A DNA stretch of 64,000 nucleotides. Source: Malacoraja senta. Its lineage: Eukaryota. Of the stretch, positions 6,945 to 57,900 are shown piece after piece. Both the position numbers and the translations under genes were made by a program. The first letter of the stretch is position 1, and each line of letters begins with the position of its first letter. The notes under the pieces were generated by a model. The model was not told the origin of the DNA. It was given only the letters and a program-made list of their open reading frames with translations, and did no database searches. Where the stretch lies: positions 18,848,001 to 18,912,000 of the forward strand of contig CM075985.1 in the NCBI GenBank assembly GCA_038087875.1, given 5' to 3'.

Positions 6945-7410
6945 TGAACATTGAATTCTCCAACTTTAGATATACTCTGCAAAACACCCCTCTCCCCTTC
7001 CTTCCCCTCTGAGCCCCAGCTTCTGTGCATCATTTCTCCCTCCCTCCCCTTCCTCCTACATTATTTCCCCAATCTAAACAATCCTCACCTCGTTAAACCC
7101 CTGGCACACAACTCGCATCTCTCTTATCCTTTTGTTCACACCTTATGTGTGTTCATCTCTGGCCTTTGTCCAACCAACTGATTATCAAAACCTCCCCTCG
7201 CCTGTATTCACCTATGACCTCCCACGCTTTGTCCTCCCCCTCCACTACCTTCCTTTCTCCCCACCCCTGCATTCAGTCTGAAGTAGTGTCCCAACCCAAA
7301 ATGTCACCACTCCATGTTCTCCAGAGATGCTGCTTGACCCACTGAGTTACTCCAGCATTTTGCGCCTTTCCTTGTGTCAAACCAGTATCTGCAGTTCCTT
7401 GTTTCTACAT
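6945..7410 (+). mobile_element. Older Penelope-like 3' fragment (others at ~2190-2510, 9895-10200, 12495-13180, 13725-14182, 42050-42322, 48868-48967, 59725-59850)
   Basis: AACATTGAATTCTCCAA ORF end, pyrimidine-rich UTR, GAGATGCTGC..TGAGTTACTCCAGCA pLTR tail. Confidence 0.7.
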
Positions 7411-9310: not shown

Positions 9311-12152
9311 AATTAATACAGTAAATTTTCTGAGGCTCGATGTCAGTGAAAATAATGTGTCAGTATTTTGGCCCTCATGTTTACACATGACCATTTTGAA
9401 ATTTGCCACGTTTAATGCTACGCATTTTTCATTGGTTAAACAAAATAGACCAAGCGTTGACCTTGTTTTCCTTGAATATTGCTCATTTCCAACTGAGCTT
9501 TAGTATCAGGTGAGAGAGTCGACCCCCAGTGTGCACCTCATTGTACCAAATAAACACACGGCAAGCAACAGAGTCTGGCTGCCTCACTTTGGAATGTTTC
9601 ATAAAACAAGGTTGCTGTTGTTTCACGTCAGCGTGCACAGGCTTCCTCATACTCTTGTCTCACGCCTCCAAATGGTTCTTCTTTCACAGCCTTAAATGCA
9701 CGCACGCCCTTGGAAGTCTCACCTCACGTGTTGTTGTTACATTTCAGTACTTGTCATCGCTGTTTGATGCTCAGCTTTCTGACACCTGAGTTGCAGTGTT
9801 TCTCCTGCCAAAGACAGGCCTTTTAGGCTCAGTCTCTGTTCAACTTACAAGATGACTTGCCCAATAATGCTGAAGGGGTATAAATAAATAAATATAGACA
9901 CAGGGAACTGCAGATGCTGGGTTACAAAAAAAAAGGCAAAGTTCTGATGTAACTCAGCAGGTCAGGCAGCATCTCTGGAGGACATGGATAGGTGACATTT
10001 TGAGTCAGGACCCTTCTTCAGACAATAAATAAAATTCCTACATGTAGGAACGAACTGCAGATGCTGTTTTAAACTGAAGATAGACACAAAAAGCTGGAGT
10101 AACTCAGCGGGTCAAAAAGCATCTCTGGAGAAAAGGAATAGGTGATGTTTTGGGTCAAGACCCTCTTCAGACTGAAGAAGTGTCTTGACCCGAAACGTTA
10201 TCTGTGAAATAAAAATGTGTTGTGTTGAGTAAAGGAAAGGTGGAGGTGAAGAGTTGGACAGTGAAGTTGGGCCAAACCTGGGAGATTGATGAGATGGATG
10301 CTGAGAAAACGCTTCCCTTTATGGGAATATCTAAAACTAGAGTCATTGGTTCAACATAAGACGTTCCCATTAAAAACAAAGTTGAAGAGGAAGTTATTAT
10401 CTCTGAGGTTCGTGAAACTTTAAAAAATTCTGCTCTTCTGAATGCAACGTCACTGAATACATTGAATGTGGAGTATAACAGACATTTACAAATAAGTGAA
10501 GTTGAGGGGCTTGGGGAGAGAACAGAAAAGTGGTGTTGTGACCAAGATTGCATCAGCCATGAATTACTGCTAGACGATGCAGGCTTGAGGGGTTTGCTGA
10601 TCTAGTCCTGCATCCTGTGATAATGTTATTACATAAATCTCAATTTCCTTGTACCAAGTCATCTTTCAAATCATCCCATCTTATTCCTGTTATTAGTCCC
10701 CATCCCTTCATGCCTGGCTTTAAGTCTTACAAATTCCCTTTACCTTTCTTTCAACTTTTCATCTATTGCCTTAAGTCTCATCCCATTTTATCCAAGCTTT
10801 CAATCACCTCTATTTTCTTGGGTCAGCATTTCTTCCTGTCAGATTCCACTTTCTTGCCTTCTATGGGATAATTTCCTACATTAAAAGCACAATATCGGTG
10901 CAAACGACTATCAGTGTTTTGGGAATCCATTAATACCAAACTTCAAATGAAATAAGCAGTAAATTCAACATGTAACAGGTCTAACTTCTTATCTTCAGGA
11001 ACTTGATATTTACATTTGACGATTATTCTGTATTGTACAGCAACGTTACCTGTCAGTTTTATGGACAACTAAACTAAAACCTAAAGAATGATGACTGAAA
11101 TGTTAATGTTTTAATATTGAAACTGCTGCATTTGAAAAACGTTGGCAATTCTCTGGATCTCAATGCTGCATTAATGTGTGAGGTTTAATTCAGGAATCTG
11201 CAAGACCTATAATTGACCTCAACTATTCTAGTAATCTAGATATGATTTTTTTCCATTATTGTTTTATTTTTAAAACTTTGCTGCTAACGTCAATACCAAG
11301 AAGGGAACAGTTAGAATTATAATTTCAGTTTAATATGTGCAATGGTGGGACATTTAATTGTCTTCACTCTCAGCTCTTGCAGTAATGAATACATGCACAC
11401 ATACAACATTTCCTAATTAACAGATTGACATTTGCCAGCCCTTTGCACGTATCAGCTGTGGGAACTCAGTGAAAGCTACGCTTAGGGTTGAACCTGCCAA
11501 TTCCCAATCCCCCTCTGTGGAGAACATTTTCATAATTGATCAGCACTGATCCAAGACCAGAAACTTACAGTATAGCACATTTCATTTGTGTTATATTGAA
11601 AACGCATTTGATTTTGACTATCCTCACTCAGAGATAGCACTGTAACATACAGTATATTCCTTTCACCTTTCGTCTTAAATGTGTGGCACACTCTCAGAAT
11701 AATCTTGAAGCAGCATTTCTTCTAATACCTGCTGAGGAAGGAATATCCCACTATTTCTTTCTCTTTGAGGATATTTTACAAAGTTATATAACCCATTAGC
11801 AATCACATGATGCTAATATGAGTTACATTAACAGGTCTGTTAAAATTAAATAAACTTATTGAGAAACTTACCTCTGAGAAACTCTCATGCTAATCATGAC
11901 AGATCCAAAAAAGACAGAATTTTAGCTATGAGGGAGGAATTGCAAAACATATACATGGAATACAAAATCAAATTTCTTATTTATATCTTTAGCTTGGCTT
12001 GTTGCAAACCTGCACCTAATACCGCTTTTTTTTCTCACCTTAGCTAGAAAATCAGAGTTGTTTTTACTTTTTAAATAAACCCAAGCACCTTATCAAATTT
12101 GAATGCTAGGTAGATCACATTGAATTCTTACTGACTAGGCCTTTATCTATAA

Positions 12153-12469: not shown

Positions 12470-14976
12470 GTTATAACAATGCAAATGAGGGAGAAAAAAA
12501 GACACAAAATGTTGGAGTAACTTGGTATCTCTGGAGAACATGGGTAAGTGATGGGTCGGGACCTTTCTTCAGACTAATTGTGGTGTGGTGGGGGGGTGAA
12601 AGCTGGAAGAAAGGAGGGCAGGACAAAGCTTGGTGAGTGATAGGTGGATATAGGTGAGGGGGAATAATAGGCAGATGGTTGGCCAAAGGCCAGAGATGAA
12701 AATACAAAAGGTGTGGCACAAAGATAGAAGAGGTTTGAATTCTGAAGCCAGGGAAAGGAATATAGGTGGAAGAGAAGGGGTGCAATGTATACAAGTCCGG
12801 GTGGGACTCAGGGAATGGAGGGAGGGAGGAGGAAAACAAAGGGTTGTTTCTAGGTTAGTTACCCAAAATTGGAGAATTCAATGTTCATACAGTTAGATTG
12901 TAAGCTATTTCTTCCAGCTTTCTCTCCCCCACCCCACCACCCCACCACAATCAGTCTGAAGAAGAATCTCAACCCCAAACCTCCCCTTTCCAAGTCTCCA
13001 GAGATGCTGCCTGACCTGCTGAGCTACTCCAGCACTTTGTGTCTCCTTTTTTCTAGATCAGCATCAGACTAAGGAAGGGTCTCAACCCGTAACGTTACCC
13101 ATTCCTTCTCTCCAGAGATGCTGCCTGTCCTGCCGAGTTACTCCAGCTTTTTGTGTCTATCTGCAGTTCCTTATGTCTACATTTTGACAGAAATGAAGAG
13201 GCAGGTTTTACACTTCATTCTACACAGACCATTGCACTTCAGCTGAATAGCTTCATATCACAACCTGGTAATTTGATATCCAATGTACAGTATTGTCAGA
13301 AGATTATTTACTGGCATTGTTTATGAATGTCAAGATCCTGGATGTCATTGGTCTGATGATGTGGAATAAAAATACAAAGTCCTTGTAAATCTAGTTCTTA
13401 GAAACTGGAATTTAGATACAGCTAAAGCCTGGTAAATGCCTTAATCTCTCCTTAAGCAATACAGTATATCCACCCTTATTTATGGGTTCAGAAGCTAAAT
13501 TACTGAACCTTCGCTGCTGACTTTATACAAATACATAATATCTAATAAAACACAGACCTCACTATAAAGCAGCCCTGTGGGTGACAAGGCAGGTCTCCAC
13601 CAATAAAATTACTGCTTACTTCAAAGGCATTCAATAATTAAATTCAATTTTTCTACAGATTTTCGGCATAACCTATTACTCAGCTTCATGGTGAATGTCC
13701 ACTGAATAAGGACAATTTGAGTATCAGCAAAGACACAAAATGCTGGAGTAACCCAGCGGGTCAGGCAGCATCTCTGGAGAAAAAGAACAGGTGAGGTTTC
13801 GGGGCGGGGCACTTCTTCAGACTTACGTATCAGGAAACTGTTTTTTTTTTGTAGAATCAAGGAACTGCAGATGCTGTTTTACAAAAGAAGACACAGAGTG
13901 TTGGAGTAGCTCAGCGGGTCAGGCAGCATCTTAGGCGAACATAGACAGGCAACATTTTGAATAGGGAAGATAGTTCTATATCTTTTGTTCTACCTGTATT
14001 TCTCTCTACATTACCGTCTATATCTCTCGTTTCCCTCTCCCCTGATTCTCAGTCTGAAGAAGGGACTTGACCCAAAATGTCACCTGTTCCTTTTCTCCAG
14101 AGATGCAGTCTGACCGGCTGAGTTACTTCAGCTTTTTGTGTCTATCTTTGGTTTAAACCAGCATCTGCAGTTCCTTCCTACACTATTTGAATAGGGATCT
14201 GGAAAGCTGGAAGAGAGCTGGGGCAGGTCAAAGGCTGACAGGTAATAGGCTGACAGGTGAGGAGGGCTATTTGATAATGATTGTAGTGGCGGGAGAGTGG
14301 TGGGTGACGGGGGGGGGGGAGGGAGGAAGGGGCAGGAGCAAGAAATCTGGTAGACAGGAGGGGCAGGAGAAAGCCTGGCAGGTAATGATTATGAGGGGTG
14401 GGGGTGGGACAAAAAAAGATGGAAGACAGGAGGGGCAGGATAAAGCCTGGCAGAATAATTTTTGTGATCCGTTAATCATTAACAGTGCATTTTACATTGT
14501 TGTTTCATTATAGATTGAAGTCATTTCCTGCACTCTTTTATTGTTAGATCAGGCATTAACATTATGAAGGAACAGCTTCCCTTGGGCTTTAACGACAGGA
14601 ACAAATGGACATTACTGGATGCTGGAGGTGCAAAATTACAGAAAGATCATCTGTGTCCCTGATGTATAATTTTCACAAAACACAGAGGGAATAAAGTACT
14701 TTGTATTTTATAATGAAAAGCGGTTACAAGGTATATTCAGCCACGGAAGTATTTCTAGTTCATTACAAAGTTAAATAAGGACTGAATTATTGAATAATAA
14801 CTGTTGCTGACCTCTTGCTCTGCTTATCACTCATTGAGAAAGCAAAGTTAAAATCAATCATGAAGCACAAAAGGAAGTGTGGCCAGCGGCTGAGCTGATT
14901 CAAAGAGCATTTCAGGGAGGTTAGGGACTTCCTTTCATCCATTCCTGCCCTCCAGTCCCTAACTCCTTCACAACTT

Positions 14977-16700: not shown

Positions 16701-17030
16701 AACACTGACTTTTCTAACTTCAAGTAACCCTTGCTTTCCCCCTATCTCCATCCCTCCCCCTTCCCAGTTCTCCAACCAGTCTGACTGTCTCCATTTTACC
16801 TCTGTTTGCTTTGTTGTTACCTTCTCCAGCTAACGATGATCTATTCTACATTTTCCTTGATCTCCATCCCCTTTGTCCTGGTTTCACACCTTACACACTT
16901 CCTTATCTATGTATCTCCCTCTCCCCTGACATCAGTCTGAAGAAGGGTCTCGACCAGAAATGTCACCCATTCCTTCTCTCCAGAGATGCTGCCTGTCCCG
17001 CTGAGTTACTCCAGAATTTTGCATCTATTT
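16701..17030 (+). mobile_element. Penelope-like 3' UTR/pLTR insertion with 14-bp TSD
   Basis: AAGATAAATGAGTG at 16687-16700 and 17031-17044; CTGAAGAAGGGTCTCGACC core. Confidence 0.8.
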
Positions 17031-17487
17031 AAGATAAATGAGTGCCGGCTTTGTAGACTTGCAGACTGCTTTACCCAGCCATCTATCAAATATATAAACA
17101 TCAAGTCTATAATTTTATACTAACAGGAAGATTTTCTTGAATTATAGGCTGGTATTTTAATCCTTTTTTTTTGTTATATTTCTTTTTGTGGACGTCTAGG
17201 AGCCCAGCATTTTAGTTTGGGCTTGCAGCAAGTAGGGAGCAGCAAATGTAAGAATTGTCTGGAAATTCTCGCAGAGCTGGAGGTATTTGCATTAACGTCC
17301 CAGTGCACGAGGTGTGTTGCGTCCCTGGTGCCAGGTTCGAGGACGTTTCTGAGTGACTGCAGAAAATTCTCAAGGGGGAAGGCTACCAACGACATAGATG
17401 GGACAAGGGATGTGGTTCTGCAAAGTGAATGTGCATGTTAGACAGGAAATTAAACAGCAAGACCTCAAGGATAGTAATCTCTGGAAA

Positions 17488-17816
17488 CTTAGTTTAGTTT
17501 TAGTTTAGTTTAGTTTAGAGATACAGCAGTGAAACAGGCCCTATGGCCCATCGATTCCATGCCAAATAGTGATCCCCGCACACTAACATTATCCTGCACA
17601 TACACTAGCGACAATTTACACATACACCAAGCCAATTAACCTACAAACCTGTACGTCTTTGGAGTGTAGGAGGAAACCGGAGCTCCCATTGAAAATCCAC
17701 GCAGCTCACGAGGAGAACATACAAACTCCATACAGACAAGAACCCGTAGTCAGGATCGAACCCAGGTCTCTGGCACTGCAAGGCAACAACTCTACCCCTG
17801 CACCACCGTGCCGCCC
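17488..17816 (-). mobile_element. V-SINE (HE1-like)
   Basis: Reverse complement of the same consensus; (TTTAG)n tail. Confidence 0.85.
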
Positions 17817-18616
17817 ACACCTTCAAGTGTCACATGCTAGTGAGAGTGTGGGACAGGCAACATGTCTGGAGAGAAGGAATGGGTGATGTTTCAGGTCGAG
17901 ACCCTTCTTCAGTCTTGAAATGTCACCCATTCCTCCTATCCAGAGATGCTGCCTATCCGCTGAGTTACTCCAGCATTTTGTGTCTATCTTCAGTGTAAAC
18001 CAGCAGCTGCAGTTCCTTCCTACACATGATATATGCATTTGGCCAGATCAGGGATAGTCAGCATGGCTTTGTGTTTGGAAAAGGGCGCCTCATTCCCCCT
18101 CTAAAACTTGAGTACATAGGTTTAAGGTGCAATGGAAAGATTTCTAAGTGAACTAAAGGGTAATGTTTTGACACAGAGGGTGGTGCATACATGGAACAAG
18201 CTGCCTGGAGAAGTGGTGGAATTGCAAAGTTTAAAAGACACGGCAGGTACATTGATAGGAAAGATTTTGTGATATATGGAGCAAGCCCAGCAAGTGGGAT
18301 TAGATCAAACGGGCAACTAGGTCGGCATTGACGTTGATCTGGACGGCCTGTATAACTTTTTGACTCTATGGCTATGTGTGCCTGTGGTTTCAAGAGGTTC
18401 TTCTATTGTATGGATGCTGGACGTCCATTAAAACTTACTGCTATACAGGAATAACCACGCTGTAAACTGATATAAACTGTTTCAGTTCTCAACGAAATGT
18501 TTACGTTATGGCTTGCCAAACTAGAATATTAATGCCCTCTGAATTATTCTATTGCTTCATACCATTCACTGTACATAAAGCAGGAAAATGTGAACAATCT
18601 TTGGATGAAAGTCTTT

Positions 18617-21600
18617 AAGAAGGAACTGCAGATGCTGGAAAATCGAAGGTACACAAAAATGCTGGAGAAACTCAGCAGGTGCAGCAGCATCTATGGAGCG
18701 AAGGAAATAGGCAACGTTTAGGGCCGAAACCTTTCTTCAGACTGATGGGGGGTGGGGAGAAGAAAGGAAAAAGGCGGAGGAGGAGCCCGAGGGCTGAGGG
18801 ATGGGAGGAGACAGCCCGAGGGCTGAGGAAGGGGAGGAGACAGCAAGGGCTAACAGAATTGGGAGAATTCAATGTTCATGCCCCCAGGATGTAGACTGCC
18901 CAAGCGGAAAATGAGGTGCTGTTCCTCCAATTTCCAGTGTTGCTCGCTCTGGCCATGGAGGAGACCCAGGACAGAGAGATCGGATACGGAATGGGAGGGG
19001 GAGTTGAAGTGCTGAGCCACCGGGAGGTCAGGTTGGTTATTGCGGACTGAGCGGAGGTGTTCGGCGAAACGATCGCCAAGCCTCCGCTTGGTCTCACCGA
19101 TGTAGATCAGCTGATATCTAGAGCAGCGGATGCAATAGATGAGGTTGGAGGAGATGCAGGTGAACCTCTGTCGCACCTGGAACGACTGCTTAGGTCCTTG
19201 AATGGAGTCGAGGGGGGAGGTGAAGGGACAAGTGTTGCATCTCTTGCGGTTGCAAGGGAAAGTGCCCGGGGAGGGGGTGGTACGGGAGGGAAGGGAAGAA
19301 TTGACAAGGCAGTTACGGAGGGAGCGGTCTTTGCGGAAGGCAGACATGGGGGGAGATGGGTAGATGTGGCGAGTGGTGGGGTCACGTTGGAGGTGGCGAA
19401 ACTGACGGAGGATTACTTGTTGTATGTGACGGCTGGTGGGGTGAAAGGTGAGGACTAGGGGGACCCTGCCCTTGTTGCGAGTGGGGGATGGGGCGAGAGA
19501 GCAGTGTTGCGGTGTATGGAAGATACCCTGGTGTGAGCCTCATCTATGGTGGAGGAGGGGAACCCCCGTTCCATGAAGAATGAGGACATTTCAGATGCCC
19601 TGGTGTGGAACGCCTCATCCTGGGAGCAGATACAGCATAGACGGAGGAATTGGGAGTAGGGGAAGCAGGGTAGGAAGAAGTGTAGTCCAGATAGCCATGG
19701 GAGTCTGTAGGTTTATAGTGGATGTCGGTCTGAAGTCCATCACCTGCGATGGAGATAGTGAGGTCAAGGAATGGTAGGGAAGTGTCGGAAATGGTCCAGG
19801 TGTATTTGAGTGCCAGATGGAAGTTGGTGGTGAAGTGGATGAAGTCAGTCAGTTGTGTGTGGGTGCAGGAGGTGGCACCAAAGCAGTCGTCGATGTAGCA
19901 GAGGTAGAGGTCGGGGATGGGGCCCTGGTACGGATTGAACAAGGATTGTTCGACGTACCCGATAAAGAGGTAGGTGTAGCTGGGGCCCATACGTGTGCCC
20001 ATAGCTACGCCTTGTATTTGGAGGAAATGGGAGGAGTCAAACGAGAAGTTATTGAGGGTAAGGACCAGCACCGCTAGGCGGAGGAGGGTGTCAGTGGCCG
20101 GGTATAGGTTGCTTCTCTGGTCGATGAAGAACCGGAGGGCTTTGAGACCATCCTGGTGGGGGATGGAGGTGTAGAGTGACTGGACGTCCATGGTGACGTC
20201 ATTGCCACAGACAGCTGTGGAGGCCAAGTCACTGAATATTTTAAAGGGAGAGATTGACTGATTCTTGGTCAGTATGAGTGTCAAGGGTTATTGAGGGATG
20301 GCAGGAGAATGGAGTTGAGAAGGAAAGATAGATCAGCCATGACTGAATGGCGGAGTAGACATGATGAACAAAATGGCCTAATTCTGCTCCGAGAACTTAT
20401 GAATAAAGCCCAAACAGTTCCTCACAGTAGATTTCCCTCACAGCATCTTACCCTTAAAATATCTTTACTAATTAAAATGACTGTATTCATGATGCCAAGA
20501 GACAATGGATCAGTCAAATATCTTATTGCAAAGGTCATATCAGTAACCTGATAGGAGAACGAATGCTGGTTACTATGTTAAATATCTCCGGATTCCTTTT
20601 CTCAAGGCCAGGCATTAGTTACAACAACATCACAGGAAAGCAACGTAAAATGGGCAAGAGATGACAAACTTAAAAAAGGAAATCACAAATTGCCAATCAT
20701 TATTGTTCCCTTCATTATCAGTGCTTGTTGGAATCATTTCAATGCTTGCACTCTGCTTATGTGCAGTGCTTCATGTTTGTTGCGGGTTGCCTTTGAGAAA
20801 TGAGAAATAAATATAAAGCTGGTATCTCTGGTTCCATGTCCCCACCCTCTTACACCAGTAATTTTACAAATTATAAATAATTTACTGTGGTATTGCTCAT
20901 AAATAAAAGATAAGAACTTAACTTTGGGCTGGGTTTTGCAGTAGGGCGGAAGCGATCACAGTCCCTTTGACGTTGACAAAAGCCACTCTTTGGTGACGTC
21001 AGTCGCTATCATGTCACGGGAATCCTGGCACGCAGGTACAGTGACGTCTTCAAGCTGGCTGAGCAGCAAATTCCATTGAAGAATTCTCACAGACAGTAAA
21101 CCAGGATGGAAAAAACAACCTTTAGCCAATACCACAAGTATTTAACATAGTGTCAAGCAAAGATGGGAGTGCACAATCATGGCGATATTCATATTTGCCA
21201 TCTTATTTGGCTGTCACTCTCATTCCCTACATGGTCTTGTATTTTTTTTCTATCAGTTAATTCAACATCTCTTTTCTCCACAAGTTTTCTTTCTCAAAAT
21301 GTCCTCACTATTTTCATCTTTCACTATCCGATGAACACATTTTCTGCATTTCTCTCACTTTCTTTCCATCTGCTCTCTATTGCATCTTACACGTTATTCT
21401 TATCACATTGACTCGAACAATGGTTTGTGACTTGGAATTTCAATAATTCCAAAAGCGTGTTGATCCTATTTGTCCAGAACTATGAAGCAATAAGAAATAG
21501 GTCCTGGAGGGTAGTGAGTATAGGACTGAAGATAGGAGAACTGATTACAATACAAATACAATACAATACAATACGGTTTTATTCGTCACATTGCACGTAA

Positions 21601-22048
21601 AGTGCAAGTGAAATGAATTTACCAGCAGCGGTATAATGATTAAGAACACACAATACACAATAAAAATTTAACACAAACATCCACCACAGCATTCATCACT
21701 GTGGTGGAAGGCACAAAATTTGGCCAGTCCTCCTCCATTATCCCCCGTGGTCGGGACCTCAACCCTCCTCAACCGTCGCTGCGGGCATCCAGATGAGTGA
21801 AAGAGAATGGAATGCGCGGAGACGACGGAGAGTGTCTGAGGTGTCTTGAACATAGGTAGGGAGGGATTTAACCAAGGGGGATAGGATGGAGTCAAGGTTG
21901 GTGGAGATGAATTTGGTGGGGCACGAACAGGCAGAGACAATGGGTCTACCGGGACAGTCAGGTTTGTGGATTTTGGGGAGAAGGTAAAATCGGGCCGTGC
22001 GGGGCTGGGGAACGATGAGGTTGGAGGCTCGGCCGGGCAGGGCGTGGG
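18617..22048 (-). mobile_element. Left arm: Penelope-like RT/GIY-YIG copy, decayed, interrupted by 20197-21801
   Basis: ORFs 19544-20284 and 18850-19347 match the + arm protein. 20196 corresponds to 22698 and 21802 to 22677, so the arm is continuous across the interruption apart from 20 bp. Confidence 0.9.
20199..21803 (+). repeat. 1.6-kb direct duplicate of 26419-28021, inserted in the Penelope left arm
   Basis: ~98% identical by eye; near-identical spurious ORFs 20291/26511 and 21163/27382. Confidence 0.95.
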
Positions 22049-24061
22049 TCTTCTTCCCCCATTGATGACCCCTTTTCCCGTCTCCAACGCACCCCCTCCT
22101 CGTGGAACCCCCCTCGTGGCCTTCCGGCTTTAGAACTCTTTATCAAAAACTGCCGCTGTGACATCAACCGCCTCAACTTCTCCACTTTCCTGTCTCACTC
22201 CAATCTCTCCCCCCCTGAACGTACTGCCATCGACTCACTCCGCAACAACCCAGATTGGGTTATCAAACGCGCCGACAAGGGAGGTGCCGTGGTAGTCTGG
22301 CACGTCGATCTCTACAAAGCTGAGGCCAAGCGCCAACTCTCGGACACCTCCTCCTACTTACCCCTGGACCATGACCCCACTGACGAGCACCAGGCCACCA
22401 TCTCCAGCACCATCACCGACTTCATCAACTCCCACGCCCTGCCCGACCGAGCCTCCAACCTCATCGTTCCCCAGCCCCGCACGGCCCGATTTTACCTTCT
22501 CCCCAAAATCCACAAACCTGACTGTCCCGGTAGACCCATTGTCTCTGCCTGTTCTTGCCCCACCGAACTCATTTCCACCTTCCTTGACTCCATCCTATCC
22601 CCCTTGGTTAAATCCCTCCCTACCTATGTTCAAGACACCTCAGACACTCTCCGTCGACTCCGCGCATTCCATTCTCTAGGCCCTCACCCCCTCATCTTCA
22701 CCATGGACGTCCAGTCACTCTACACCTTGATCCCCCACCAGGATGGTCTCAAAGCCCTCCGGTTCTTCCTCGACCGGAGAAGCAACATATACCCGTCCAC
22801 TGATACTCTCCTCCGCCTAGCGGAGTTGGTCCTTTCCCTCAATAACTTCTCGTTTGACTCCTCCCATTTCCTCCAAATACAAGGTGTAGCTATGGGCACA
22901 TGCATGGGCCCCAGCAACGCCTGCCTCTTTATCGGGTACGTCGAACAATCCTTGTTCAAAACGTACCAGGGCCCCTTCCCCGACCTCTACCTCCGCTACA
23001 TCGATGACTGCTTTGGTGCCACCTCCTGCACCCACACACAACTGACTGACTTCATCCACTTCACCACCAACTTCCATCCGGCACTCAAATACACCTGGAC
23101 CATTTCCGACACTTCCCTACCATTCCTTGACCTCACTATCTCCATCGCAGGTGATAGACTTCTGACCGACATCCACTATAAACCTACTGACTCCCATGGC
23201 TATCTGGACTACACTTCTTCCTACCCTGCTTCCTGTAAGGACTCCATCCCCTACTCCCAATTCCTCCGTCTACGCCTCATCTGCTCCCAGGATGCGGCGT
23301 TCCACACCAGGGCATCTGAAATGTTCTCATTCTTCAGGGAACGGGGGTTCCCCTCCTCCACCATAGATGAGGCTTGCACCAGGGTCTCTTCCATACCCCG
23401 CAACACTGCTCTCTCTCCCCATCCCCCCACTCGCAACAAGGGCAGAGTCCCCCTAGTCCTCACCTGTCACCCCACCAGACGTCACATACAACAAGTAATC
23501 CTCCGTCAGTTTTGCCACCTCCAACGTGACCCCACCACTCGCCACATCTTCCCATTTCCCCCCATGTCTGCCTTCCGCAAAGACCGCTCCCTCCGTAACT
23601 GCCTTGTCAATTCTTCCCTTCCCTCCCGTACGACCCCCTCCCCGGCCACTTTCCCTTGCAACCGCAAGAGTTGCAACACTTGTCCCTTCACCTCTGCCCT
23701 CGACTCCATTCAAGAACCTAAGCAGTCGTTCCAGGTGCGACAGAGGTTCACCTGCATCTCCTCCAACCTCATCTATTGCATCCGCTGCTCTAGATGTCAG
23801 CTGATCTACATCGGTGAGACCAAGCGGAGGCTTGGCGATCGTTTCGCCGAACACCTCCGCTCGGTCCGCAATAACCAACCTGACCTCCCAGTGGCTCAGC
23901 ACTTCAACGATCCCTCCCATTCCATATCCGACCTCTCTATCCTGGGTCTCCTCCATGGCCAGAGCGAGCAACACAGGAAATTGGAGCAACAGCACCTCAT
24001 ATTCCGCTTGGGGAGTCTGCATCCTGGGGGCATTAACATTGAATTCTCCCAATTCTGTTAG
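22049..24061 (+). CDS. Penelope-like element polyprotein: reverse transcriptase + GIY-YIG endonuclease (5'-truncated, 670 codons open; Neptune-like)
   Basis: Frame stays open 80 codons upstream of the tracked 22289 start (…VIKRADKGGAVVV). Motifs: LPKIHK, PGRPIVS, MDVQSLYT, GVAMG, RYIDDCF, Cys linker CNRKSCNTC, LIYCIRC..YIGETKRRLGDRFAEH. Confidence 0.92.
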   Translation, partial: SSSPIDDPFSRLQRTPSSWNPPRGLPALELFIKNCRCDINRLNFSTFLSHSNLSPPERTAIDSLRNNPDWVIKRADKGGAVVVWHVDLYKAEAKRQLSDTSSYLPLDHDPTDEHQATISSTITDFINSHALPDRASNLIVPQPRTARFYLLPKIHKPDCPGRPIVSACSCPTELISTFLDSILSPLVKSLPTYVQDTSDTLRRLRAFHSLGPHPLIFTMDVQSLYTLIPHQDGLKALRFFLDRRSNIYPSTDTLLRLAELVLSLNNFSFDSSHFLQIQGVAMGTCMGPSNACLFIGYVEQSLFKTYQGPFPDLYLRYIDDCFGATSCTHTQLTDFIHFTTNFHPALKYTWTISDTSLPFLDLTISIAGDRLLTDIHYKPTDSHGYLDYTSSYPASCKDSIPYSQFLRLRLICSQDAAFHTRASEMFSFFRERGFPSSTIDEACTRVSSIPRNTALSPHPPTRNKGRVPLVLTCHPTRRHIQQVILRQFCHLQRDPTTRHIFPFPPMSAFRKDRSLRNCLVNSSLPSRTTPSPATFPCNRKSCNTCPFTSALDSIQEPKQSFQVRQRFTCISSNLIYCIRCSRCQLIYIGETKRRLGDRFAEHLRSVRNNQPDLPVAQHFNDPSHSISDLSILGLLHGQSEQHRKLEQQHLIFRLGSLHPGGINIEFSQFC

Positions 24062-24083
24062 CCCTTGCTGTCTCCTCCCCTTC

Positions 24084-24637
24084 ATAGATATACATAGATA
24101 CATAGAAAATAGGTGAAGGAGTAGGCCATTCGGTCCTTCGAGCCTGCACCGCCATTCAATATGATCATGGCTGATCATCCAACTCAGTATCCCGTACCTG
24201 CCTTCTCTCCATACCCCCTGATCCCTTTAGCCACAAGGGCCACATCTAACTCCCTCTTAAATATAGCCAATGAACTGGCCTCAACTACCTTCTGTGGCAG
24301 AGAGTTCCAGAGAATCACCACTCTCTGTGTGAAAACGTTTTTTCTCATCTCGGTCTTAAAGGATTTCCCCCTTATCCTTAAGCTGTGACCCCTTGTCCTG
24401 GACTTCCCCAACATCGGGAACAATCTTCCTGCATCTAGCCTGTCCAACCCCATAAGAATTTTGTAAGTTTCCATAAGATCCCCTCTCAATCTCCTAAATT
24501 CTAGCGAGTATAAGCCGAGTCTATCCAGTCTTTCTTCATATGAAAGTCCTGACATCCCAGGAATCAATCTGGTGAACCTTCTCTGCACTCCCTCTATGGC
24601 TATAATGTCCTTCCTCAGATTTGGAGACTAAAACTGT
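24084..24637 (-). mobile_element. Young CR1 LINE 3' fragment nested in the Penelope right arm
   Basis: ORF 24184-24588 nearly identical to the C-terminus of 61780-62718; (CTATGTAT)n-type tail; Penelope sequence resumes at 24640. Confidence 0.9.
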
Positions 24638-24947
24638 CCCTCAGCCCTCGGGCTGTCTCCTCCCATCCCTCAGCCCTTGGGCTCCTCCTCTGCCTATTTC
24701 CTTTCTTCTCCCCACCCCCCCATCAGTCTGAAGAAGGGTTTCAGCCCGAAAAGTTGCCTATTTCCTTCGCTCCATAGATGCTGCTGCACCCGCTGAGTTT
24801 CTCCAGCATTTTTGTGTACCTTGGATGAAAGTCTTTGGGAACTTCTGCTGACACCAATACATTTCACTTGATCACTTTTTTTTATTTTTTCCTCTTCCTT
24901 GAAGCTAGAGGAATGTCTTCAAGGCAAAAGATCTTTAAAACTTAAGC

Positions 24948-25081
24948 GTGTGGGAAAGAACTGCATACGCTGGTTTAAATCGAATGTAGACACAAAATGC
25001 TGGAGTAACTCAGTGGGACAAGCAGCATCTCTGGAGAGAAGGAATGGGCGATGTTTTAGGTCGAGACCCTTCTTCAGACTG
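24948..25081 (-). mobile_element. 134-bp pLTR mini-element with 10-bp TSD
   Basis: AAACTTAAGC at 24938-24947 and 25082-25091. Confidence 0.8.
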
Positions 25082-25273
25082 AAACTTAAGCACTTGGTGG
25101 GCTTGATCATTTAAAGTACAGTGTTTCCAATTTTCAGTTGACATCAAACCAATTTACTGCCTGCAGGATGTTGTCTTGTATGTTTCCTCCCACACTCTAG
25201 ACATTGGCTCCAAAAAGCCTCTCCAGACTAGAAAGGCCCCATATTTCCATCAAGCATATTTCCATCAGGTTCA

Positions 25274-26096
25274 GTGGGCGGCGCGACTCTCGTCAGCAGC
25301 AGCCTCTGCAGTCGGTCTGTCTTTTCTATGTAGTTTTTGTTGGGGGTTTTTTGTCGGGGTATGTGTGTGGGGGGGTGGGGGCGGGGAACTTTAGGGTCTT
25401 TCCCCTGCACGGGAGACCCGACCTTTTCTTTGTCGGGTCTCCGTTGTCGTTGGGGCTGGGCAACGTGGAGCGGCCTCCAGCAGGAACGACCTGGGGCTCC
25501 AGTTGCGGAGCTGCGGACTACTCACCGTCGCGGGGCTGGCCGAGTCCGGAGCGGGTGGAGCTGTGGTGGAGCGCTGCTGCGACCCGACCCCCGGAGATTC
25601 GGAGGTTACAACCGCGGGTCTGGCGGACGGCAACACCGGAAGCCCGCGGGTCCCTGGTGGGAGACCGCTTTTCGGGGCTTCCGCAGCGGCGACTTCTCCC
25701 ACCCGAGTTGCGGGTTGAGGAGCACCTGGAGCGGGGCTTGGAATGGCCGCGGGACTTTGCGAGCGCGCACCGGGGCTCTAACACCAAGACCCGGTGCGCG
25801 ACCTTGCATCGCCCGGCGTGGCTTTAATGGCCGCGGGATAATCACCATCGCCCGCCGGGGGCTTTGACTTTGACTTTGACTCTGACATCGGAGGGGGGAG
25901 TGCAGTGGAGAGATAAGGTTTTTTTTGCCTTCCATCACAGCGCTGTGATGGATGTATGTGTAAATTGTGTTGTGTCTCGGGTCTTTTTCATTTTGCAATG
26001 TATGGCTGCAGAAACGACATTTCGTTTGGACCTCAACGGGGTCCAAATGACAAATAAATTGTATTGTATTGTATTGTATTGTATTGTATTGTATTG
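25274..26096 (+). mobile_element. GC-rich ~830-bp non-coding retroposon (LINE-tail dependent), copy 1
   Basis: 5' GTGGGCGGCGCG…CTGCAGTC, two 3' hairpins, AATAAA, (TTGTA)n tail; homologous copies elsewhere in the window. Confidence 0.75.
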
Positions 26097-26418
26097 CATG
26101 CAGCACTGCTCCCGTTGTGGAAAGGGTAAAGATCATGCTGCCCAACTATTTTCACGTCTTGGGCATTTTAAAGCAACTATCTATATTCTGGCCACAGTAA
26201 AAAACATTTCCTATTTCTAAAGGTACTAAAACAGTTCCACAACAGAAACAGAAGTAAATAAAATTGTCTTGAAGGCTATGTCCTCTCCCTTGTAGAATTA
26301 AGCATGAGTGTACCAACAAGATGTGAAATTCTTGATCGATCTAGTCTCTATCCCACAGCGCAGAAGGCATAATTCTGCATAAAGTTTATTTAGTCAGAGG
26401 GTGGTAAATCTGTGGAAT

Positions 26419-28021
26419 TCATTGCCACAATCAGCTGTGGAGGCCAAGTCACTGAATATTTTAAAGGCAGAGATTGACTGATTCTTGGTCAGTATGGGTG
26501 TCAAGGGTTATTGGGGGATGGCAGGAGAATGGAGTTGAGAAGGAAAGATAGATCAGCCATGACTGAATGGCGGAGTAGACTTGATGAACAAAATGGCCTA
26601 ATTCTGCTCCGAGAATTTATGAATAAAGCCCAAACAGTTCTTCACAGTAGATTTCCCTCACAGCATCTTACCCTTAAAATATCGTTACTAAATAAAATGA
26701 CTGTATTCATGATGGCAAGAGACAATGGATCAGTGCAATATCTTATTGCAAAGGTCATATCAGTAACCTGATAGGAGAACGAACGCTGGTTACTAGGTTA
26801 AATATCTCCGGAATCCTTTTCTCAAGGCCAGGCACTAGTTACAACAACATCAAGGAAATCAACGAAAAATGGGCAAGAGATGACAAACTTAAAAAAGGAA
26901 ATCACAAATTGCCAATCATTATTGTTCCCTTCATTATCAGTGCTTGTTGGAATCATTTCAATGCTTGCACTCTGCTTATGTGCAGTGCTTCATGTTTGTA
27001 GCGGGTTGCCTTAGAGAAATGAGAAATAAATGTATAGCTGGTATCTGTGGTTCCATGTCCCCACCCTCTTACACCAGTAATTTTACAAATTATAAATAAT
27101 TTACTGTGGCATTGCTCATAAATAAAAGATAAGAACTTAACTTTGGGCTGGGTTTTGCAGTGGGGCGGAAGCGATCACAGTCCCTTTGACGTTGACAAAA
27201 GCCACTCTTTGGTGACGTCAGTCGCTATCATGTCACGGGAATCCTGGCACGCAGGTACAGTGATGTCTTCAAGCTGGCTGAGCAGCAAATTCCATTGAAG
27301 AATTCTCACAGACAGTAAACCAGGATGGAAAAAACAACCTTTAGCCAATACCACAAGTATTTAACATAGTGTCAAGCAAAGATGGGAGTGCACAATCATG
27401 GCGATATTCATATTTGCCATCTTATTTGGCTGTCACTCTCATTCCCTACATGGTCTTGTATTTTTTTTCTATCAGTTAATTCAACATCTCTTTTCTCCAC
27501 AAGTTTTCTTTCTCAAAATGTCCTCACTATTTTCATCTTTCACTATCCGATGAACACATTTTCTGCATTTCTCTCACTTTCTTTCCATCTGCTCTCTATT
27601 GCATCTTACACGTTATTCTTATCACATTGACTCGAACAATGGTTTGTGACTTGGAATTTCAATAATTCCAAAAGCGTGTTGATCCTATTTGTCCAGAACT
27701 AAGAAGCAATAAGAAATAGGTCCTGGAGGGTAGTGAGTATAGGACTGAAGATAGGAGAACTGATTACAATACAAATACAATACAATACAATACGGTTTTA
27801 TTCGTCACATTGCACATAAAGTGCAAGTGAAATGAATTTACCAGCAGCGGTACAATGATAAAGAACACACAATACACAATAAAAATTTACACAAACATCC
27901 ACCACAGCATTCATCACTGTGGTGGAAGGCACAAAATTTGGCCAGTCCTCCTCCATTATCCCCCGTGGTCGGGACCTCAACCCTCCGCAGCCGTCGCTGC
28001 GGGCATCCAGATGAGTGAAAG
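26419..28021 (+). repeat. Donor copy of the 1.6-kb duplication
   Basis: The CR1 tail at its left end and the GC-rich element at its right end continue beyond the duplicated boundaries, marking this as the original. Confidence 0.9.
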
Positions 28022-30235: not shown

Positions 30236-30716
30236 CCTAAGCAAAGTTATATCCAATTTTAGCTCAAATCTCACTCCTTTGTATTTCAGTTCCAATGCAA
30301 CAAAAATAACATCGGAAATAGGTGCAGGAGTAGGCCATTCGGTCCTTTGAACCAGCACCACCATTCAATATGATCATGGCTGATCATCCAGAATCAGTAC
30401 ACCGTTCCTGCTCTCTCCCCATATCCCTTGATTCCGATAGCCCTAAGAGCTACAATATATAGTTTTTCTTATTATGAGCTGTATCGTATTTATTTCTTTG
30501 CAGGGATATGTAGATTTCTCTCTCTGCAGTCCATAACTTCCATCATTTATTTTAGTATTTGTTTTGTAAATCTGTAGAAGATTATCTTATACTTACCCCA
30601 CACTGAACTTTAATTACCAGTTTTTATCAGTAGTGAGATTATTTTGCAATGATTTGGTTCCAACATGACTGATTTTTATGCCACTTATGGACATCAGCAA
30701 ACTTGGATATGAAACA

Positions 30717-30891
30717 TGCGTAGGAAGGAACTGTGTATGCTGGTTTACACCTAAGATAGACACAAATTGCTGGAGTAACTCAATGGGTCAGGCAGCATCT
30801 CTAGAGAAAAGGAATAGGTAACGCATCGGGTCGAGACCCTTCTTCCGAACTGCCTGACCCGCTGAGTTACTCCATCATTTTGTGTCAATCT
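30717..30891. mobile_element. Miniature fold-back pLTR element with 14-bp TSD (1 mismatch)
   Basis: TTGGATAT[G/A]AAACA at 30703-30716 and 30892-30905; inverted arms. Confidence 0.75.
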
Positions 30892-31605
30892 TTGGATATA
30901 AAACACTCTTTCATCATTTGAGTAATTTCTGACCACGGTGAAAAGAAGCCCCTTATGGTTCTTTACCAGTTATATTCTGGCCACCGGATCATGTAACCAC
31001 GAGATCTACAGTATGTGTGCCTCCTACCTAAATAGACCTTTTGCCTTTTCAAAGGTTTAGCTCCAATTCCATACTGTTTCACGTATCTCAACAGTCTCTC
31101 ACCTGGAACTGAGTTAAATGCCTACTGTAAGTTAAAATAAATAACATCCATGGACATAGGCTTAACTACCATGTTAGATATCTCTACAAAATCTCAGCTT
31201 GGTTTGTTAAACATCACTTACTGTTTATTATTGATGGTCTAAACTCCAAAAGAACTCAGTATTCTAGGAGTGCCTTCACCTCCGTGTTATAATTTATGTA
31301 TCATTTGGCTCAGGTCAATGTGACCTTTCACCATCATAGTGAAAGGCACAATAAATACATGGTGGAGCCAATTTAACAGTGGGGAAGAATGTATTTATAG
31401 AATGTAGCATTGACCTTGGGCTATTTTGCCAAGTCACTCTTTGAACGTTGTCTTATTGCTGTTTACACACATTGCAACATGCACATTGCTCCTGATAGAC
31501 AGCGCACAGTAGAGTTGGCATATTTTAAAAGAAAGAGATAAACTGGTTGAGTGATTTGGGAGAGAAATTCCACAAGGCTGGTCAAACAAAGTAGAAGTGT
31601 TCAGA

Positions 31606-31920
31606 TAGATACATAGATACATAGAAAATAGGTGCAGGAGTAGGCCATTCAGCCCTTCGAGCCTGCACCGCCATTCAATATGATCATGGCTGATCATCCA
31701 ACTCAGTATCCCGTACCTGCCTTCTCTCCATACCCCCTAATCCCTTTAGCTACAAGGGCCACATCTAACTCCCTCTTAAATATAGCCATGAACTGGCCTC
31801 AACTACCCTCTGTGGCAGAGAGTTCCAGAGATTCACCACTCTCTGTGTGAAAATGTTTTTTCTCATCTCGGTCTTAAAGGATTTCCCCCTTATCCTTAAG
31901 CTGTGACCCCTTGTCCTGGA
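31606..31920 (-). mobile_element. CR1 3' fragment, same young family
   Basis: Near-identical to 24084-24400. Confidence 0.88.
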
Positions 31921-33037: not shown

Positions 33038-33196
33038 NNNNNNNNNNNNNNNNNNNNNNNNNNNNNNNNNNNNNNNNNNNNNNNNNNNNNNNNNNNNNNN
33101 NNNNNNNNNNNNNNNNNNNNNNNNNNNNNNNNNNNNNNNNNNNNNNNNNNNNNNNNNNNNNNNNNNNNNNNNNNNNNNNNNNNNNNNNNNNNNNNN
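33038..33196. other. Assembly gap (159 N)
   Basis: Run of N flanked by pyrimidine-rich low-complexity sequence. Confidence 1.
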
Positions 33197-48867: not shown

Positions 48868-48905
48868 CAGTCTGAAGAAGGGTCTCGACCCGAAACGTTG
48901 CATAT
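48868..48905 (+). ncRNA. Minimal hammerhead-ribozyme-like motif in a pLTR (representative of many copies)
   Basis: CTGAAGA core, stem II GGGTC-TC-GACCC, GAAA, palindromic AACGTT stem III; Penelope-like pLTRs are known to carry minimal hammerheads. Confidence 0.6.
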
Positions 48906-49339
48906 TTCCTTCTCTCCATAGATGCTGCCTCACCCGCTGAGTTTCTCCAGCATTTTTGTCTACCTACTGCAGAATAAGATGTTGGTAGCAGGTTTGGGAA
49001 ACAGGTGGGCGTGGATCACTGCAGCCAGCAGGTCCGGGGTCTTTTGTACATGAGCATATTTTACATTTGGTGCCCTCCCTCACTCAAATATGTCACCAAG
49101 TCAACATTCGCACTACTGTGTGTGGGAGGTTGGCTATGAACAATGTGTCTGCCATACTTCTTGTATTACTGCAACGATGACACTTAAGAAGTGCCGAAAG
49201 GCACATGAAAGTCAAAAAAAAATGAATGTCGCTGAAAGGAACTCAAATCTGTGATTTAAAATGCTGAAACGGTGCATAATCAAATGTAATCTTACAAAAT
49301 GATTGTTTTTTTTTAAATAAAGCATGAGCTGGATTGGGC

Positions 49340-54905: not shown

Positions 54906-57900
54906 CTGACTGTTCATATGTAAACTTCAAGGGCATGTGTTTTAAAAGCATATTTCCAACTGCAGTGGTTAAGTTAGTGGGTTAGAACAATGGGTTAACA
55001 ACCAAGAGGAGGTGAAATTCCAGCCTGCTAGCTGTGGCATTTAAAGTCCGAATAGTTAAAAGAGACCAGTCTGGAGAAGGGTCTTGACCTGAAACGTCAC
55101 CCATTTCTTCTCCCTGGAGATGCAGCCTGAGTTACTCCAGCTTTTTGTGTCTATTTTCTGAACAATAACTGCAAAGTACCATTTTGTCATTTAAAACCCT
55201 CCTGTTTCACTGTATGGAAATGCAGATGCATTGTGTCCTTCATGGGAAATCCCTACCCAGCAGCATAATGGGAGTAAATGAAGAATGTCTTCAATTCAAG
55301 GTGGCAGCGAATCGCGTTTCAAAGCATAGGCAATAAATACCTGTGGTTGAAAAATAAAGTCCATCAGATAAGGAAACAGGCCAAACTACACTGATGCCAA
55401 CCCACAGCTATTGATTCAACTGCCCTCTTAATGGTGTATAAATGCCATTACTGTGGGTAATTCACTACCACTTCCCAAAGGCTGTTGGAGAAGAGCGACA
55501 TATTATGCCACTGCTAACTCCAACCCGAAAAATCGTATCAATGTTGCAGTGGACAACAGGACCTGAAGCAAACTAATTTGGAAGATGCAATATATAAATG
55601 GGGTGGCACCAGCTTTGTCTTGTTTAAAATCAACTGGTGTGGCCAGAATTCTCTTTGGGATTTAATGTAAACATAAGTTCAGTTCTTTCACATATTATTT
55701 AGGAGATAAAATGATGAAACCAATGCAAGTTAGTTAATTGTTTACATTTTTAATTGTTTAAAAGTCACAAGCTTGGTAGTATTCAATGTCTGGATATTTA
55801 CACGGGTTGAAGTGTCTACCAGTGAGCCTTGTGCCTTTCACCTTCCAACAACCAGTGAGTGCAGTTACACACTGAACTGGGGGTTAATAAGGGTAAATGA
55901 TGGCAGAGACTGCAAGAGACAAGCTATGTATGTGGCCCTATTCATGATTGACACATAATATGATCAATGTTTTACACAGTAATTACTACATCTTGCCAAT
56001 TACATAATTTCAGCTAACAGCTGATTCAAATTTTACCTTGCCAATTTACTTTATGCGGAATTGGCTATTTACTACTTACTAGTTTGAGTCCTCGCCTATG
56101 ACTTGACAGTGGCTGTTAAGTTGTGTGAAACTACCTTTAAATTTAAAACAAATTGCCCTGAACTGCCCATATTCCAGAGAATGCAAACCTAATTTGTGTA
56201 ATTGTTACTTGTAATTTAACCCTTGGGAATACAGGTTCCATTCTGGTAAATTGATACAGCAGTCTCCAAGGTCATTTAAAATGTGTTATCCAAAGTTGCT
56301 GTTTACTCCAGGTGTTACTTAACCGGGGCTGTGTTTACTGCAAGCAATACTGCGTCCATCTCTGAATGCTAACCTGCTAGCATCTTACTGGTTTTCTTGA
56401 TTACTTTCTGTATTAGTCAGATGTTTACATGTACATTCGTTTTCAGAACCTCCTAAATGTAAAACTTTACTACGCATACCTCCAGATTCGGGGACAGTTC
56501 CCAGATGTCATTACACAACTGAACTGTCCTCTCACCAGCTAGAGAGCAGTCCTGTCCTCCCATCTTCCTCATTGGAGACCTTCAGACTATCATTAATCAC
56601 ATTTTATTGGACTTTATCTTGCACTAAATGTTATACCCTTTATCCTGTATCTGTACATTGTGGACGGCTTGACTGTAATCATGCATAGTCTTTTCACCGA
56701 CTGGATAGCACACAACAAAAAGCCCTTCACTGTACTTTGGTAAATGCAACAATAATAAAATAAACTAATAAACAATTAAGTGACTGTATGGGATTAAAAT
56801 GGAGTATCCCACATTGAAATTAATGTGACACATATTAGCTCATTCTCTTTACAGTTCTTTATCACTATTAACTTAGATAGGTTGCTTTCTATGCTATTAG
56901 ATGATACATATGCTTAAAGGTTGAGGGTCGATATAGACTCTTGTTGACACCAATCATGATCTGCCAATTGGAATACATGGTAGAAGAAAAAAATAATCAG
57001 TTGACTTCCTCCTGGTCAATTTCTTCAAGCATGACCTTTTTGTGAATGTGTGCTGCTAGCTGATTGTTCATTTAGAAATTCTTCAGGTCACATTGGTTAT
57101 TCTCAGTATCTCAAGTGTTACACTAATTGGTCAATAATTCCCCAAGCTTCCCCTGTAACAAACTGGAAAAATGTGAAGAATTTTCAAATCTAATGAAGCA
57201 GTGAAGGGATTGCTGGTATTTTCACCTTTCCCACTCTAGGAAACCATCTGTTGCTTGTCATTGTAAATTTATTTTCATTATGTTATTTTTATGTCAATCT
57301 TGATGAATTCCTGGCCCGATTCAGCTTTAGTTTCCTTGACGAAATACTTTCTCTACTGTAAATATAACCACAGATTACTCAACATACCTGCCCTTCCTTT
57401 CATTTACAGTAATCATTATCAATTTTCAACTGCTCCGCATTCCTTTCTCGTGTGTTGTTCCTTCTAATAAACTTTGTAGTTTCCTTCTCATAGTCCATCA
57501 GCGTAGCTCATGTTATTTGTTTAGTCACCCTGGGATCTTTGTTTCTGCCTACTGGAGAACAAGAGGAGGATGGGACTGATTGGGCTGTTCCACTGGGAGC
57601 TCACATCGTCCCGAGGGCCTGAACAGATCCCCATGCCATGAGGAGGTTTCTCCCAGTTGTTGGAATCTCGAGCACAAAAAAGTAGAGCTGCAGAAATAAC
57701 TCAACAGGTCAGGCAGCATCTATGGTGGGAAATGGACTGTCGACATTTCGAGTCAAAACCCTTCATCTAGATATTGACCTGCAATGTCAAATATCCCTTT
57801 CCCTCCATAGATGCTGCCTGACACTCTGAGTTTCACCAGCAGTTCTCTTTTTTGCTGAAGATTTCAGCACCTGCAACCTCTTGTGCCTCCATTTTACCGT

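Follow-up and report, generated by a model that had tools for sequence, protein, structure and literature searches.

A probable fold-back insertion of a Penelope-like element in Malacoraja senta: two 3' ends outward within one 16-bp target-site duplication

A 6.2-kb unit on contig CM075985.1 of Malacoraja senta (assembly GCA_038087875.1) has the outline of a DNA transposon, as its two long inverted arms are enclosed by a short direct repeat, although both arms carry the coding sequence of a retroelement. The point at issue is whether one insertion event produced both arms and, if so, from which primers and templates they were made. The window analyzed here is a stretch of 64,000 nucleotides (nt) of this contig (18,848,001 to 18,912,000, forward strand), and all positions are counted from its first letter. 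The unit (18601-24836) most probably represents a single insertion event of an endonuclease-bearing Penelope-like element (PLE). Between the two copies of one target-site duplication (TSD) lie two 5'-truncated PLE copies with their 3' ends outward, the left one about 1.83 kb and the right one about 2.22 kb long (Table 1).

Architecture of the unit and identity of its arms

The limits of the unit are set by the 16-mer TTGGATGAAAGTCTTT, which matches exactly on both flanks, as the sequence-only reading of this DNA had claimed, and occurs only twice in the 64-kb window (18601-18616 and 24821-24836). The chance expectation for this 16-mer, with up to two mismatches allowed, is 0.11 matches. Repeat search and BLAST placed the inverted arms at 18642-20196 plus 21802-22048 against 22431-24083 plus 24639-24826, with 92-97% identity per block. 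When both interruptions were removed, global alignment gave 95.4% identity over 1797 aligned nt, in agreement with the arms of about 1.8 kb proposed previously. The arms differ by 43 transitions (17 of them CpG), 39 transversions and 5 gap events. In addition, the sign of the GC skew reverses at the centre of the unit, which is expected since two copies of one strand-asymmetric sequence lie there in opposite orientation.

The coding content of the arms was examined at the protein level. The frame of the right copy is open from 22049 to a stop at 24061 and encodes reverse transcriptase (RT) followed by a C-terminal GIY-YIG domain. This open reading frame (ORF) aligns with residues 237-902 of a 904-amino-acid full-length PLE protein (50% identity over 669 amino acids), whose precomputed Pfam entries include RVT_1. 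Among 8000 candidates scored, 1942 homologues were found at E<=1e-10, and the closest named ones are uncharacterised shark and ray proteins (Chiloscyllium, Rhincodon, Mobula, Hypanus). The Pfam RVT_1 profile on its own remained below the cut-off (22.4 vs 29.6 bits). The GIY-YIG profile scored 22.8 bits in the left copy (cut-off 22.6) and 20.2 bits in the right, and the C-terminal GIY-YIG motif LIYIGETKRRLGDRFAEH aligns with the homologue. Tblastn revealed the same ORF on the minus strand of the left copy, broken into pieces, of which 21802-22048 matches residues 127-210 of the right-copy ORF. Because the right ORF runs on the plus strand and the left pieces on the minus strand, both outer ends are element 3' ends, and this part of the earlier reading is upheld. 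Judged by these frames, the arms belong to an endonuclease-bearing PLE with a predicted C-terminal endonuclease.

Of the features by which PLEs are recognised, a PLE-type RT ORF and a GIY-YIG domain at the C terminus are both present, and so are a one-sided tail and an inverted, 5'-truncated head-to-head copy inside one TSD. A direct pseudo-long terminal repeat (pseudo-LTR) around a full-length copy was not found, as both copies are 5'-truncated and show no internal direct repeat of the terminal region; truncated insertions are expected to lack such a repeat, and its absence is compatible with PLE membership. A putative minimal hammerhead core is point-mutated in both arms (18716-18740 in the left, 24728-24752 in the right). 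The core CTGAAGA-A-GGGTnnnnnCCC-GAAAC, with its usual bulged base, is intact in 5 related copies vs 0.16 expected. A search of Rfam over 17000-26500 and the best-preserved related copy returned no hammerhead family, only weak chance matches to microRNA and long non-coding RNA families.

Outer ends, central junction and origin of the two copies

Alignment of the arm ends identified ...CCAGCATTTTTGTGTACC as the element-sense end common to both copies. In the left copy it is followed by 31 more nt (TTCGATTTTCCAGCATCTGCAGTTCCTTCTT) and then by the TSD. The right copy abuts the TSD directly, and the TT that follows can be assigned either to the element or to the target. The right end had been described as about 30 nt short, with TT microhomology to the target; the end alignment puts the difference at 31 nt, and the microhomology is present. 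The termini of about 27 related copies in the window fall into a tail-bearing class of about 13 (...CCAGCATCTGCAGTTCCTTCCTACA) and a tail-less class of about 14 that end near GTGTCTATCTT, and the tail is therefore genuine element sequence. The 129-nt 3' end was folded as RNA in search of a stem-loop at the start sites, and its z-score of -1.3 did not set it apart from shuffled sequences. At the left border the tail, in antisense, continues the top strand from its 3' end ...GTCTTT-3', and at the right border ...GTGTACC, also in antisense, continues the bottom strand from its 3' end ...CATCCAA-3'. The two strand ends would be the 3'-OH ends of a 16-nt staggered cut, each bearing the start of a complementary DNA (cDNA) at one of the two termini of the family.

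At the centre, the homology of the left-copy arm ends exactly at 22048, and the homology to the 904-amino-acid protein begins with the first codon after it. The 382 bp at 22049-22430 had been taken for a spacer. Since the protein homology starts at that codon, they read instead as the 5' continuation of the right-copy ORF, that is, as a longer 5' end of the right copy, and the two copies are joined directly at 22048/22049. Each arm holds private element sequence, namely the 31-nt tail in the left and 382 nt of ORF in the right. Neither arm therefore templated the other, which would exclude both snap-back synthesis and a DNA-level inverted duplication of a single copy.

Self-priming has been discussed as a source of PLE inverted repeats (Arkhipova et al., 2013; PMC3846280). 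In the present case, a single cDNA primed at the right nick would snap back and copy itself into the inverted arm. Such a process gives the right topology (antisense, then sense, on one strand), palindromes are often present at PLE inverted junctions, and one short copy in the window has the palindromic junction CTTCAG-A-CTGAAG (~10165-10177). However, the tail of the left arm is absent from its supposed template, the 382-nt stretch is unique to the right arm, and there is no palindrome at 22048/22049. Moreover, copying would have reached the target primer, and the result would be an inverted duplication of the flank, not a direct 16-bp TSD. Neither an arm copied from the other arm nor a palindromic or loop-only centre was found at this unit, and we consider snap-back synthesis very unlikely.

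The evidence favours a model in which a 16-nt staggered cut left two 3'-OHs and each primed its own reverse transcription, on two RNA molecules or on one tandem RNA. We infer the nick geometry, the priming on both strands and the joining of the 5' ends as follows. The element endonuclease would nick both target strands 16 nt apart. The top-strand 3'-OH, at the end of the 16-mer, would prime at the distal start site and give the left, tail-bearing copy, and the bottom-strand 3'-OH would prime about 31 nt further upstream and give the right, tail-less copy. Both cDNAs would stop early, at about 1.83 kb and 2.22 kb. Their 3' ends, which correspond to the element 5' ends, would then be joined, or prime on each other, at 22048/22049, and the 16-nt overhangs would be filled in to form the TSD. 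The right arm would later have received a fragment of a CR1-like long interspersed nuclear element (LINE), and the left arm a 1.6-kb copy of host DNA from the neighbourhood. A mechanism of this kind, with two RT products primed from the 3'-OHs of a staggered cut and joined at their 5' ends, was already part of the sequence-only reading, and it is supported by the private sequences as well as by the biochemistry of a related protein, PAc (see below).

The arrangement recurs in the family. A mini unit at 30703-30905 consists of a minus-strand tail-bearing copy placed head to head with a 41-nt plus-strand tail-less copy, and it is flanked by a 14-nt TSD (TTGGATATGAAACA / TTGGATATAAAACA, 13/14 matching). 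Among pairs of adjacent related-copy anchors no more than 400 bp apart, four are head-to-head and one is tail-to-tail; the latter is formed by the right end of the 18601-24836 unit and an independent copy beside it. The mini unit also bears on the possibility that a pre-formed head-to-head master locus was transcribed through and inserted as one RNA, in which case part of the 4.6% arm divergence could predate the insertion. However, the truncation points of the mini unit are different, as if each event builds its own unit. In addition, the left border would require an RNA 5' end coinciding with the antisense of the canonical tail terminus, and the inner junction has no second copy in the window. 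Insertion from such a master locus thus appears highly improbable.

Several further observations concern related copies. A non-coding derivative of the PLE 3' end, about 130 nt long, is found at about 30 sites (for example 7234-7403, 10048-10175, 14049-14177, 17930-18019, 24954-25082 and 48868-48965). It starts at the minimal hammerhead core CTGAAGA..GAAAC and occurs singly, as tandems and as head-to-head pairs; copies that end with the ~31-nt tail are about as many as those that end without it. A hairpin at 17844-17966 is such a head-to-head pair of short PLE-end copies; its resemblance to plant MIR2118 is a chance match (26 bits vs a threshold of 85) and was rejected. At 10160-10200 a minus-strand copy has a short inverted partner at its 5' end, and their palindromic junction, CTTCAG-A-CTGAAG, is of the kind behind the self-priming model in the literature. 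Around the head-to-head candidates 13733-14177, 178xx-18019 and 57654-57844, no exact repeat of at least 8 nt was found as a TSD; these copies are old. A third copy of the PLE family at 1-357, about 90% identical and with a tail-less 3' end, is cut by the window start, and a more distant PLE endonuclease fragment lies at 2208-2469 (~52% amino acid identity). The window also contains 159 N at 33038-33196, either a gap or a mask.

The TSD of both TSD-flanked fold-backs begins with TTGGAT, similar to the first tail bases (TTCGAT / TTTGGTT; 24821-24826 vs 18642-18647, and 30890-30905). This likeness could reflect a target preference or microhomology at the tail-less start. A preference for tail-like target sequence at tail-less ends was found to be inconsistent across the other tail-less copies and was rejected.

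Table 1. Features of the fold-back unit and of the donor of its host-derived block (window positions).
Feature	Position	Strand	Remarks
Left TSD copy, TTGGATGAAAGTCTTT	18601-18616		exact match
Tail of left copy (31 nt), element sense TTCGATTTTCCAGCATCTGCAGTTCCTTCTT	18617-18647	-	absent from right copy
Left PLE copy, 3' part	18648-20198	-	non-coding end, GIY-YIG, C-terminal part of RT
Copied host block in left arm (1.6 kb)	20199-21801	+	donor 26419-28021
Left PLE copy, 5'-most part	21802-22048	-	97% complementary to 22431-22677
Head-to-head junction of two 5'-truncated copies	22048-22049		no filler detectable, no palindrome
Right PLE copy, main part	22049-24083	+	5'-truncated at about residue 237 of ~900-amino-acid ORF
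CR1-like LINE 3' fragment, 5'-truncated, later insertion	24084-24638	-	ORF2 C-terminus
Right PLE copy, 3' end	24639-24820	+	ends ...GTGTACC, without tail
Right TSD copy (16 bp)	24821-24836		exact match
Donor of the 1.6-kb block	26419-28021	+	1582 bp right of right TSD copy

Related species, later interruptions and the 6220-bp register

Read evidence came from contigs of low-coverage runs, which were compared with 18030-24029. A contig from the same species (X17) covers 18176-18637 without a difference and passes from the unique flank 21 nt into the tail. Two related species, H and I (X25 and X28), are about 4% diverged in the flank. Their contigs, 730 and 597 nt long, match the flank as far as 18614 and 18616, respectively, and continue for another 118 and 156 nt that are unlike anything in 18030-24029. 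The orthologous sequences thus part from the unit where the 16-mer ends, with neither arm present there, which fits an empty site and speaks against an intermediate with one arm. A paralogous empty site was not detected in the window, where the flanks are unique.

These contigs are also relevant to a different origin of the pair, namely two independent insertions of one family into one spot, or an inverted duplication of a single copy at the DNA level; the match of the two 16-mers would then have nothing to do with the pair. The family is indeed very abundant (about 30 related 3'-end copies in 64 kb), and recognition of their own tail sequence has been reported for PLE endonucleases. However, the relatives show neither arm at the left junction, and independent insertions would need one TSD each, while here an exact 16/16 repeat lies precisely at both outer element ends. 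A DNA-level duplication, in turn, cannot yield a tail on a single arm. We give this explanation hardly any credence.

As regards age, the flank divergence from species H and I is 3.9-4.3%, and for the 1.6-kb block the divergence from H amounts to 4.7%. The insertion is old, near the split from these two species, since the divergence between its arms (4.6%, or 3.6% without CpG transitions) is similar to that of the flank. Either mutation is faster in the GC-rich element than in the AT-rich DNA around it, or the arms already differed when they arose.

The two interruptions of the arms had both been taken for later insertions, but only one of them is a transposon. This is 24084-24638, a LINE fragment whose 3' end, on the left, is microsatellite-like, with a TSD of at most 2 bp and further copies at 62265-62810 (95%) and 31600-31920 (96%). 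In contrast, 20199-21801 is a copy of host DNA. It is 97.9% identical to 26419-28021 (33 substitutions), and a nested CR1-like LINE was rejected for it, as only its first ~204 nt are LINE-derived and the remainder is low-copy DNA. At the donor, a dead CR1-like fragment of 240 nt precedes 1.4 kb of low-copy DNA. Because this LINE stub reaches 34 nt further upstream at 26419-28021 than at 20199-21801, the former is the donor, and because the stub is dead, LINE 3' transduction is unlikely. The block is an insertion and not a replacement of arm sequence; the arm lost about 20 nt at the site, with a 2-nt filler at one junction and 2-nt microhomology at the other. In an independent run, block and donor versions are each present at approximately single-copy depth. 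With a divergence of 2.1%, the block appears to be younger than the insertion of the PLE.

The start of the block lies exactly 6220 bp before the donor start, a distance equal to the TSD spacing, so that the arm to the left of the block and the flank to the left of the donor both measure 1582 nt; nothing else is in register. The chance of this is about 1 in 4600 for one boundary, before allowing for scan size. Among the models considered, no fitting mechanism was found for the register. Tandem duplication, in-register gene conversion, heteroduplex repair, a consensus or polishing artefact and a haplotype mix-up were all rejected, as they predicted replacement, near-identity or half depth, none of which was seen. 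That the PLE machinery, or repair of the palindrome it created, gave rise to the block, which then would not be an unrelated later event, seems very unlikely to us. If true, it would imply that the template was switched between element RNA or DNA and the target DNA beside it in a way that keeps length or register. We know of no such switch described for any retroelement.

Could the unit be an artefact of the assembly, for instance a chimeric fold-back, or two PLE copies falsely joined? Tandem and inverted PLE structures are known to confuse assemblies, and no contig was seen across the centre of the unit. However, chimeric palindromes are near-identical, whereas these arms differ by 4.6% and each carries a private insertion. 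The right-copy ORF is open up to the junction, and independent contigs show no differences from the assembly either at the left flank-tail junction or in the copy of the 1.6-kb block that lies in the left arm. Furthermore, the outer borders share one TSD and therefore belong to one locus. An artefact is, in our opinion, the least probable of the explanations considered.

Some points nevertheless weigh against a single insertion event. The arms have diverged from each other (4.6%, or 3.6% without CpG transitions) about as much as the locus has from species that do not carry the insertion (3.9-4.7%). The empty site in the relatives is deduced from the left side only, the right flank being beyond the stretch compared. 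In the contigs of the low-coverage runs none was seen across 22048/22049, and the inner junction therefore depends on the assembly alone. Finally, a single insertion does not explain the exact 6220-bp register shared by the TSD pair and the 1.6-kb block.

Comparison with known systems

A typical PLE insertion has a 5'-truncated copy in inverted orientation, one TSD and, at one end only, a tail of 30-40 bp (PMC8557442; PMC3846280). Inverted pseudo-LTR units in 8-10-bp TSDs and a 'characteristic 31-bp extension' were described by Arkhipova et al. (2013), who also report head-to-head as the commonest inverted PLE arrangement and host DNA captured in elements (PMC3846280). The sequence-only reading implied that the product was unusual. 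This is not supported, as an inverted truncated copy, a single TSD and a one-sided tail are already standard for PLEs (PMC8557442; PMC3846280), and the inference of two-strand priming is sound but not new. The unit resembles canonical PLE insertions in its strong 5' truncation, in its head-to-head inverted copy with one TSD around the whole, and in a tail of about 31 bp at one end only (Evgen'ev & Arkhipova, 2005; Arkhipova, 2006; PMC3846280; Craig et al., 2021, PMC8557442). It also shares with them the captured host DNA inside, and may share the minimal hammerhead motif in the terminal repeat, mutated here. However, both copies are truncated here, with arms of 1.8 and 2.2 kb and neither a full-length copy nor a direct pseudo-LTR. 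Furthermore, the TSD measures 16 bp, compared with 8-10 bp in the rotifer PLE examples, and the host is a cartilaginous fish.

The closest biochemical parallel concerns PAc (Poseidon of Anolis carolinensis). Purified PAc protein was shown to cut both strands of its target and to extend them (Frangieh et al., 2024; PMC11167929). It begins reverse transcription at two neighbouring internal sites, separated by about 30-40 nt that correspond to the tail, and the two strands behave alike; the protein is predicted to dimerise (PMC11167929). The joining of the two products and the origin of inverted copies are not shown in that paper (PMC11167929). As with PAc, the target here is AT-rich, and a tail-bearing and a tail-less end lie one on each side of the staggered cut. 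In contrast to the in vitro work, the start sites are deduced here from genomic ends only. The use of the alternative start sites found in vitro at the two ends favours priming on both strands over self-priming. For this event at least, the sequence itself speaks against the model of self-priming that was under discussion in 2013. PLE integration is still only partly understood, and the unit is a clean natural specimen of it. The fold-back raises no new question and makes no old one newly testable.

In L1 twin priming, which Ostertag and Kazazian are said to have proposed in 2001, the 3'-OH of the second target strand reportedly also primes reverse transcription and leaves an inverted segment within one TSD. 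That process is said to use one RNA, to which the second primer anneals internally, and to give non-overlapping segments with one element 3' end. The present unit differs from such products, as its arms overlap over 1797 aligned nt and both of its outer ends are 3' termini.

Finally, the unit shares with fold-back or terminal inverted repeat (TIR) DNA transposons the long terminal inverted repeats inside a TSD. Unlike TIR transposons, it has no transposase, its repeats are the coding body of a retroelement, and its ends are RT start sites. For the annotation of cartilaginous-fish genomes this calls for caution, as long inverted repeats within a TSD can be products of retroelements and not DNA transposons.

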